Of a stretch of DNA of 64,000 nt, positions 8,598-11,060 are shown in pieces (the first letter of the stretch is position 1; each line of letters starts with the position of its first letter). The stretch is from Orbicella franksi (lineage: Eukaryota). A program made the translations under genes and the position numbers. The stretch lies in assembly GCA_964199315.1 (NCBI GenBank), contig OZ116710.1, positions 1,240,001 to 1,304,000 of the forward strand, written 5' to 3'. The notes below the pieces were generated by a model. It saw nothing but the letters and a program-made list of their open reading frames with translations, was not told the DNA's origin and ran no database searches.

Positions 8598-11060
8598 TCA
8601 AAATAACAGAGAGAACGACGTCTGAGTCTCCATGACGATAGAATTCAGGGCGCAATATCCTGACGTCTTCTGATGTGAGCAGTCCCAGGCTTTTACTCTG
8701 ATAAAGGTGGAATCAATAGAGGTAGCCTTTGACCAGAAAGAACCTTTGTTAGGCCTAAAGGAAATACAGTCCTGCGGTTTTAACAGAAGCACCATGCCTG
8801 AAGTCAGGTTTATCTCATGTCGTGTTTCGCCATTGATCTCAAACTGCCATTTGCCAAAGTTCTGCTTCAGTACCGTCACCACAGCTAGCCCAACCTCTGA
8901 GTTATCGGGATCTACTACAACAGTCTGTGGAATCAAATCTTCAACTAAGGGATTTTCAGCTGTAATCTTCTTGACTTCTTTGTTTTGTTCTATTAGTTTG
9001 TTGATTGCTAAGTTCATTTTAGTCAACTTGCTAACTTGAACACATTTTGAGTGTGTGTAACTAGCATTCTCTGGAACTGGTGGAAACAGTGGAAACCATG
9101 TGTCACGTCACAGTGCAAATGTTGGCCGGTCACTCTCGGGCTTGATCCTCACGTTCAGTTTGGCCACTCCTCGTCCCAGGCTACACTCGCTGTTAAGCGG
9201 TCCCACACATATTTTCTCAAAGAAAACAAATCGACGATTATAAACTGGGAGCAGTTCCTTCTCACCTACATATCTGCCAATGCCATACAGAATCCTTTGA
9301 TGAACGCCAGGACGTTTTTGTTTCTCGAAAATATGTCAGTGGAATAGAAACTCTGACCCAGAATAGGACCCAGCAATTTGGTTTAACATCAATTAGAGCG
9401 GAGTAGAAATCAAATGTAAACTGCAGAAAAAATGGCGGACAGTAGAAATATCACAACTGTCTCGTCCCTCCACACATTAGTTGATTTTTATGCGTTCGTT
9501 TTCTGGTTCTTTTCTGGTTCTTTTTGGTATTGCTTATCGCTGGGTATTAATTGTTAGCTTGTTTTTTTTTTTTATTAACTGTCTGCTTTCAAGTTTGTCC
9601 AACGTAGTTAGATTACCTTTTTATCCGGTACAATGAAAGATCTAGCAAAATTTCTAATTCTTCTCTTCAACTTCAAATCGCCCTCAACGCCCATCCATTC
9701 AACAATTTTTCTTATGATATCATCAGTCTTGTCCTTTTTTATCTTAAGCAGGAGTCTCTTGTAGTCTTTAGGAGAAATTCGCAGCCATTTTGGTTTTTCC
9801 TAAGATATACAAAAACACAAATAAGCCACCGACTGTGCGGGTCCGTCCCTTGAATAATAATGAACTTGTTTTGCAGTTGCTTTAAATTGACTGAAACAAC
9901 GGCTCATCCGTAGGGGCCGTATGAAATCCATCGCTATGAAGAATGAGAAAATGCCTTCTTTTTTTTTCTTTTTAACACCCCTTTAAAACCCGCTCATGAA
10001 TGGTGAACACAAGTCAAGTCTTGGCAGAAGTTCTGTTTTTGCGGAATGTGTATTTGTCAATTGATCGTGGTGTAAGAAGATGCTCTCATATCCACAACGT
10101 CTCTACGTTTAGAGAAGAATTCCCATAGAGAGACCACTACTATTAATAGTTATCAGCAGGAGCCAGTGAAAACTTTTGAACTTACTGCATTCAAGCTGAA
10201 TGAAGGAGGGGCCGGAATTTTGCAAGCTGGAGCCAACGTAACGGTTACTCCACCAAATACATTCTTAGCGGGTTGTACAACACATTTCGCGTTTGAAGTG
10301 AAGAACACATTTGGAAATATGTCCTCAGGTCGTTTAGATTTTTTAGAAGAACATTTAAGTTGGACTGTGGAAAAAACGAAATACGTCATAAAAATACCTC
10401 ATAAAGAAATTTCCATGTCCCGTGTTACCGCTAGATGGAGCTGTGTTGTCCTCACTTACCCTCTCTAATAGGATGAATTTTGGTCATGACTATCCCAGAC
10501 AGCTTTTCTTCCAGCTGCTTCACTGCTTGATGGTATCGCGAAACAAACTTCTTAGACAATCGGCAGGTCAGTGATTCTTTTAATTTCAACTCACTGCAGC
10601 TCATAGGCTGACTTGTAACGTTCACGTAGCTCGAAAACTGAGGGAAAGAAAACCGGAGATCAAGTTTGGTTAAGCCGAGCCAATGTCTACAAAAATCAAA
10701 CATAGTGACGTAAGGCTTGGAAATATAATTCACCCTACTGTTACATATATGTATAGGTTTTAGTAAAATGATGCATCTCTTCGGACATGCCGTAAATACA
10801 TGGACAACTTAATCTAGTACTAAACAAACTTGTACCAGTTGTTTATTCGACGGTCGGTCCTCCATCAGAGGAATGTTTGGACGAATGACCGCGATGTTCG
10901 GACCAGCAGCACAATTTGGCAGCAAAAAAAACCATGGCCATTGTGTCCCTGTGCCGGAGAGAGTCAGCAGTGTTCGCGCACTGTCCATGCGCAGAATTAT
11001 CCGGTGCAGATAAAATTTCAAACGACAAGAAACCATGTGCACAAGAGGCAAACCTTCACA
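8598..11060 (-). pseudogene. Disrupted multi-exon gene encoding bacterial-adhesin-like Ig/cadherin-type repeats
   Basis: Phase-compatible GT-AG exons about 10737/10686-10460, 10397-10186 and 9799-9617 (183 nt, open), then a long exon from 9420 with a frameshift and an in-frame TGA at 9108-9110. Translation includes VAKLNVRIKPESDRPTF, GLAVVTVLKQNFGKWQF, LLLKPQDCISFRPN and FIRVKAWDCS. Confidence 0.55.

Follow-up and report, generated by a model that had tools for sequence, protein, structure and literature searches.

A decaying coral gene, probably the remnant of a large surface receptor, whose cadherin-like module is homologous to the unit repeated in giant bacterial adhesin-like proteins

Background

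The repeats that most closely resemble the module described here belong to giant bacterial DUF4347/VCBS/cadherin-like surface proteins, which are putative biofilm adhesins as assigned in silico only (PMC13723633).

These proteins carry 3–20 tandem units and are without Cys-rich, TIG or REJ parts. The Pfam families Cadherin_4 (PF17803), Cadherin_5 (PF17892) and Big_9 (PF17963) extend over the first half of this unit and leave the GxWQY..AWD second half unmodelled. A second comparison is offered by the REJ receptors (polycystin-1, PKDREJ and sea-urchin suREJ), which combine REJ, GPS-like and TIG parts with a large extracellular region, and a third by the classical cadherin EC and dystroglycan-type domains.

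The locus analysed here lies on the minus strand near the start of a 64,000-nucleotide stretch, referred to below as the window (contig OZ116710.1, positions 1,240,001 to 1,304,000), in the 497-Mb, 39% GC genome of the coral Orbicella franksi. Its module has the motif order and the predicted beta-sandwich of the giant bacterial units, with profile E values of 1e-13 to 1e-78, but the eukaryotic REJ-type proteins to which it belongs carry one unit followed immediately by a GCD..CGxC..CxGCDG segment, as well as an ‘FWS’ insertion, and the coral copy has an additional 27-residue helical insert that the bacterial units do not. The parent family resembles the REJ receptors in its REJ, GPS-like and TIG parts and large extracellular region and differs from them in having a single C-terminal transmembrane segment, a short tail and an added N-terminal module of bacterial type; the window copy itself has lost the REJ part entirely. 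Sequence likeness to the classical cadherin EC or dystroglycan-type domain is weak and runs through the VNDxP-type linker; the module has no Pfam Cadherin match, and identity is 10–16%. A search of the literature on REJ and TIG domains in corals and on horizontal transfer of cadherin-like domains in cnidarians returned nothing relevant. We consider it quite likely that the locus is a stop-bearing remnant of a receptor gene, that its module is homologous to the bacterial repeat, and that any transfer between bacteria and eukaryotes was ancient, the direction being left aside.

Results and discussion

Gene structure

Exon limits were set from splice signals and by comparison with L020, the locus of another coral, which was found via the protein P0011. 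Four exons were delimited in this way, all on the minus strand. Exon E1 (10460..10637) is preceded by an acceptor AG at 10639-10638, ends in phase 1 at a G|GTAAGT donor after 10460, and has 70% amino-acid identity to L020:6900-7100, with the frame kept into E2. Exon E2 (10186..10364; acceptor AG 10366-10365, donor GTAAGT after 10186) contains the motif ‘VVQPAKNVFGGVTVTLAP’ and is 58% identical in amino acids to L020:8695-8895, and exon E3 (9617..9799; acceptor AG 9801-9800, donor GTAATC after 9617, phase 0) is 65% identical to L020:9444-9614. Exon E4 (8607..9215) encodes the cadherin-like module, with a VNDxP-type strand followed by DPD, GxWQ, LLL, RP, AWD and TSFS motifs, and has 63% amino-acid identity to the intact P0011 exon of L020. 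It is truncated at its 3′ end, where the open frame continues to a stop at 8600-8598; the 142-residue open-reading frame at 8598-9026 (minus strand) extends upstream in frame as far as a TGA at 9110-9108, which the strand ‘...NVRIKPESDRPTFAL’ precedes in the reading direction.

Joined, E1 to E4 give 388 codons with this TGA as the one in-frame stop, compared with 32–33 stops in each of the other two frames, a difference far beyond chance. The peptides quoted in an earlier sequence-only reading of the window were all found on the minus strand, and its proposal of an intron-containing animal gene agrees with the four in-phase exons conserved in L020. Its donors at 10460 and 9617 and its junction 10186/9799 are correct, with canonical GT/AG ends and the frame kept, while two of its exon starts had to be moved: the true acceptor after donor 10460 gives a start at 10364 and not 10397, and the last exon begins at 9215 and not 9420, the stretch 9420-9216 being unconserved in the other coral and breaking the frame. 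A second repeat unit had also been read into E2, a region that neither of our profiles matches; only a 21-residue motif of E2 matches residues 245-264 of the full-length relative P0111, at the same position in the protein (E 0.017 in a tiny search).

The three introns of the remnant, with their GT/AG ends, are common to L020, which rules out a processed (retro)pseudogene. Bacterial contamination was likewise rejected, given the introns, the synteny with the other coral’s locus and the presence of the sequence in many DNA runs, labelled as coral or coral metagenome. Upstream of E1 a further conserved block (10815..11070, minus strand) is ~73–75% identical to L020:6181-6438 and has no single consistent frame; candidates for its identity are an upstream exon, a UTR and a regulatory or promoter stretch.

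Decay and transcription of the window copy

The in-frame TGA (9108..9110, minus strand) falls inside the module exon, at a codon that is AGG (Arg) in L020, whose module exon is an uninterrupted 261-residue open-reading frame (P0011) with a TIG exon ~6 kb downstream. The stop is common to two further loci, L006 (from a closer relative, with ~90% nucleotide identity) and the near-identical L007, and no contig of four runs differs at 9108-9110. In both the window and L007, similarity ends at about 8608/8607, the breakpoint (8598..8612, minus strand) at which homology with L006 and L020 stops. The L006 exon runs on from there into a Cys-rich segment and then a donor site equal in position and phase to that in the window’s paralogue. 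Neither the Cys-rich segment nor the TIG exon has an orthologue in the window’s genome, no related downstream exon was found within -20/+104 kb, and no REJ domain or anything else orthologous lies 3′ of 8607. Lacking the Cys-rich, TIG and later exons, the locus is classed, by comparison with its intact orthologue, as a non-processed, 3′-truncated pseudogene with disabling lesions, in agreement with the suggestion of the sequence-only reading that this copy is decaying. With the TGA and the deletion of everything 3′ of ~8607, no membrane-anchored receptor could be made from it.

A young interspersed repeat of ~447 bp (8002..8450) lies 150 bp past the breakpoint. It has 1,906 first-look candidates in the genome, the copies among those listed being 95–96% identical, reaches very high depth in RNA libraries and is probably a young non-autonomous element.

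In two studies, RNA-library contigs cover exactly 8800-11350 and leave the flanks bare, which means that transcription of the locus may occur. Over 8990-11134 these contigs are contiguous across the introns and contain no splice joint, and splicing is therefore deduced from conservation and frame rather than observed; a raw-read run of a poly-A library, in the 1.5-Gb sample searched, gave no reads at the locus. The expectation that RNA would bridge the proposed junctions was thus not borne out, and the window copy is a 3′-truncated, stop-bearing remnant without evidence of a mature mRNA.

Substitution rates complicate this picture. For the module exon, dN/dS is 0.26 against L006 (dS 0.29), 0.36 against L020 and ~2, on few changes, against L007. 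The value of 0.26 would be unexpected if the window copy and L006, which share the TGA, had both been pseudogenes since they split. Both lineages may have been inactivated recently, with the stop arising in parallel via a one-step intermediate codon; the TGA may be a polymorphism of long standing; alternatively, some use of the locus may have been retained. According to this last explanation, a short product from an internal start, read-through of the stop or a transcribed non-coding role would persist and ‘pseudogene’ would overstate the decay, a case that can draw on the ratios against L006 and L020, which show no rise despite the shared stop, on a frame intact over 388 codons save one, and on the RNA contigs that cover the locus and stop short of its flanks. 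We regard it as improbable, however, since the TGA lies inside the module and upstream of its core, L006 has an added 19-nt frameshifting tandem duplication directly after the TGA, the Cys-rich, TIG, REJ and transmembrane parts are gone, neither splice joints nor poly-A reads were seen, and the ratio against L007 is well above those used in its favour, albeit on few changes.

Relationship to bacterial repeats

Of 1.84 billion representative proteins, 1,010 matched a profile made from coral sequence (A3) at E<=1e-3, and 375 of these reached E<=1e-10. The best matches were giant proteins containing as many as 20 units apiece, with E values of 1e-78 to 1e-19 on multi-repeat proteins, and included a protein from a Magnetococcus metagenome-assembled genome, Skermanella stibiiresistens WP_157619102.1, a Methylophilaceae DUF4347 protein and a Planctomycetaceae VCBS-repeat protein. 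A word-indexed protein search returned close coral relatives only, and querying with P0111 added two proteins, low-complexity words swamping the candidates. In alignment A4, about nine motifs are colinear over ~150 residues (VNDxP, ED, DxD..GxA, GxWQY, W, ALLL, RFxP, F.AWD and TAFS), at an identity of 20–25% between the coral module and the bacterial units.

As a control for circularity, a second, bacteria-only profile was built from 130 multi-repeat units alone and run against all 2,390 six-frame open-reading frames in the 124 kb surrounding the window. It found the open-reading frame of the window (8601-9107) at E 6.4e-13 and otherwise just the two module exons of the paralogue. These results bear on the idea that the resemblance arose by convergence, or by chance from the composition of a generic Ig-like fold, for which the low identity, the middling matches to solved structures (Z <6) and the lack of any significant Foldseek match in the PDB could be cited. 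Convergence leaves unexplained why an independent profile should pick out the window frame and the paralogue exons alone from 124 kb, why about nine motifs should stand in the same order, and why 375 proteins should match at E<=1e-10; it is refuted by the profile statistics already, and we give it practically no chance. The module is accordingly judged, on profile and motif evidence, to be a homologue along its whole length of the repeat unit in giant bacterial DUF4347/VCBS adhesin-like proteins, as had been proposed from the sequence.

The retrieved proteins split cleanly into those with one unit and the Cys-rich motif and those with at least three units and no such motif. The coral module does not belong to a tandem array: eukaryotic members of the REJ type have a single full unit without exception, and the others among the matches listed have at least three.

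Domain assignment and predicted fold

Pfam and NCBIfam searches with pieces of the window gave no match, and the window open-reading frame had none in Pfam at E<=1. The paralogue exon scored 13.9 bits against bacterial cadherin-like Pfam families, for a gathering cut-off of 25.1. Cadherin_4 matches 13 of the 42 members of the A4 alignment, and about one-third of the aligned units match Cadherin_4, Cadherin_5 or Big_9, while none of the eukaryotic members comes to E 0.01 in these families, and P0011 has no Pfam family at all at E<=0.01. The same three families are carried by the nearest Atlas clusters, both by features and by shape. We place the module within the bacterial cadherin-like group (Cadherin_4/Cadherin_5/Big_9) as one of its divergent members.

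An AF2 model of the window’s own sequence, made with a shallow alignment, was unusable (pLDDT 43), and the intact orthologue P0011 was modelled with an alignment at pLDDT 77. The nearest AFDB and Atlas clusters of the P0011 model are bacterial cadherin-like proteins; among solved structures, cadherin EC and dystroglycan-type domains come closest, with Z 5–5.9 over ~100 residues. Scores of Z 5–6 allow the predicted model to be called a ‘cadherin-like sandwich’ in arrangement and nothing narrower. In the Foldseek search of the PDB, Calx-beta appeared as non-significant rows only. Metazoan CSPG (Cadherin_3), Calx-beta and classical cadherin repeats, which the sequence-only reading had named, together with a lack of bacterial matches, as the outcome that would speak against it, thus did not emerge as best matches, having no Pfam match and, for cadherin EC, structural scores of Z <6 only. 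A phmmer search of the open-reading frame against PDB sequences gave chance SH3-like rows only, and Rfam on 7401-11400 gave one sub-threshold chance row.

The paralogue and the parent receptor family

Genome-wide, the module is present in two copies only, the remnant and a neighbouring paralogue. The paralogue module lies at C13:1308012-1309083, just beyond the end of the window; it is intact, 31–42% identical to the remnant, and split by a phase-2 intron that is missing from the window copy and from all relatives of the window-copy subfamily. E1 to E3 of the remnant have no detectable counterpart in the paralogue, since tblastx of the remnant against the paralogue matched the module alone. 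The paralogue is a large minus-strand gene that reaches at least C13:1314000, with further exons matching TIG, and its 3′ half lies inside the window (51977..64000, minus strand), where it shows REJ exons, a GPS-like motif and a transmembrane segment. Successive parts of the Pfam REJ model are colinear with the paralogue exons at 59820-56440, and the open-reading frame at 51977-52891 contains a GPS-like motif (21.1 bits, just below the cut-off), a Thr-rich stalk and one transmembrane segment.

Full-length relatives were recovered from marine metatranscriptomes, namely P0111 (2,034 aa), P0123 (2,116 aa) and P0193 (2,339 aa), which are only 25–30% identical to one another and to the coral gene. 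Each contains a signal peptide, a degenerate N-terminal region, one module, ADAMTS-like CGxC repeats, TIG, REJ (E 1e-32 to 1e-36), a GPS-like motif, a transmembrane segment and a short tail. A TIG/REJ/GPS protein of the hemichordate Ptychodera flava has the Cys-rich motif and is without the module. Membership of the polycystin-1 type (PKD1/PKDREJ) was considered and set aside, as Pfam found only REJ and no PLAT or polycystin channel part in P0111 and P0123, and these have one terminal hydrophobic segment in place of a multi-pass region.

These comparisons suggest that the locus is a non-functional 5′ remnant and that the coral gene it derives from belonged to an uncharacterised family of large, single-pass receptors at the cell surface, with a proposed order of signal peptide, degenerate N-terminus, cadherin-like module, ADAMTS-like CGxC repeats, TIG, REJ, GPS-like and SEA-like parts, transmembrane segment and tail. 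In intact members the module would form an extracellular, probably Ca2+-stabilised beta-sandwich, bearing acidic motifs of cadherin type, at the distal tip of a REJ/GPS receptor. Its role is probably that of a binding or spacer domain, as suggested by fold, context and analogy with the bacterial adhesin-like proteins. The locus itself is an ordinary decaying gene, and the interest lies in the family: for the outermost domain of these REJ/GPS receptors Pfam has no animal model, and yet that domain is demonstrably the unit repeated in giant bacterial adhesin-like proteins.

One assembly (ENA ERZ25073755, loci L018 and L019; 45–48% GC) carries two diverged module genes, P0124 and P0133, which fall in a third subclade of the module tree described below, P0133 having a REJ exon 6 kb downstream. 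The family was therefore duplicated in another host too.

Origin and age of the module

In the maximum-likelihood trees a single branch, supported at 99/93 and 98/96, sets the single-unit modules of REJ type apart from the rest. The trees are unrooted and backbone support is low, so neither nesting within bacteria nor a direction of transfer can be claimed. The eukaryotic clan comprises three deep subclades, the window copy grouping with P0011 and P0017 and the paralogue with P0111, P0123, P0193 and P0150. As the two coral copies sit in different subclades, their duplication predates the divergence of the P0111-type relatives. An AU test did not reject the grouping of the REJ-type clan with sponge-type units (p 0.29).

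The sponge-type units come from a set of multi-repeat proteins that were first assumed to be bacterial. This assumption was dropped for P0052, P0085 and P0141 in view of a sponge RefSeq relative and a eukaryotic gene context: P0052 falls in one cluster with XP_062517662.1, a protein of the sponge Corticium candelabrum, and, with the genomic context of its cluster taken from the short member P0201, adjoins COMM-domain and CCDC93 fragments. P0085 and P0141 share the P0052 architecture, and the units of all three form two groups, one of which adjoins the REJ-type clan. Together with L022 (ENA ERZ21742408 ctg5911l) these are proteins of 5,000–6,100 residues with ~9–11 full module copies each, a P-domain of proprotein convertase near the N-terminus and Big_9/Cadherin_4/5 near the C-terminus; P0052 is called as essentially a single huge open-reading frame. 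The P0052-type gene appears to be a complete adhesin-like gene belonging to the genome of a sponge.

The sequence-only reading had proposed that the cnidarian lineage took up a bacterial adhesin module by horizontal transfer, that the module came to be carried with introns there and that this copy then decayed. Several observations are in keeping with such a history: the bacterial homologues are highly significant and far outnumber the eukaryotic ones, no Pfam animal family matches the module, and the hemichordate TIG/REJ/GPS protein is without it. Against this, the eukaryotic modules make up one clan with three deep subclades and the coral paralogues in different ones, relatives only 25–30% identical occur in other eukaryotes, a sponge carries a related multi-repeat gene in a eukaryotic context, and no nesting inside any bacterial lineage is supported. 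The module is not confined to cnidarians, given the multi-unit protein of C. candelabrum and the divergent P0111, P0123 and P0193. We therefore hold acquisition in a cnidarian to be very improbable. The phylogeny that had been called for bears out a single eukaryotic clan, and the nesting of that clan within bacterial sequences did not emerge from it.

The preferred reading, a decayed receptor gene with a module of old standing, is in line with the tree: as judged from sequence, all eukaryotic module copies have one old origin, predating at least three deep subfamilies, and the event is not cnidarian-specific. If one ancestral module is older than the three or more deep subfamilies, a transfer between eukaryotes and bacteria in whichever direction would be ancient, the word ‘ancient’ here reflecting sequence divergence and tree shape, not named phyla. 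A more specific history is that one giant-adhesin repeat was transferred from bacteria once, long ago, into an early-animal or pre-animal lineage and fused to a Cys-rich/TIG/REJ/GPS chassis, founding an undescribed receptor family, with sponges separately keeping the whole adhesin-like gene. This is put forward tentatively and we rate it as rather unlikely in this full form; if true, the deep paralogues seen today in corals and in other eukaryotes of the sea would be survivors of this receptor family. The family offers a testable case of an extracellular module common to bacteria and early-branching animals, and the A4 profile can be used for mapping its distribution and for annotating coral and sponge genes.

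Other features of the window

Two further features were noted. Between the remnant and the paralogue, a single open-reading frame of 626 residues (47403-49283, plus strand) has one hydrophobic segment and a long Ser/Arg-rich tail. Several exon-sized open-reading frames at 16335-20870 (minus strand) encode a putative M20-type metallopeptidase/amidohydrolase.
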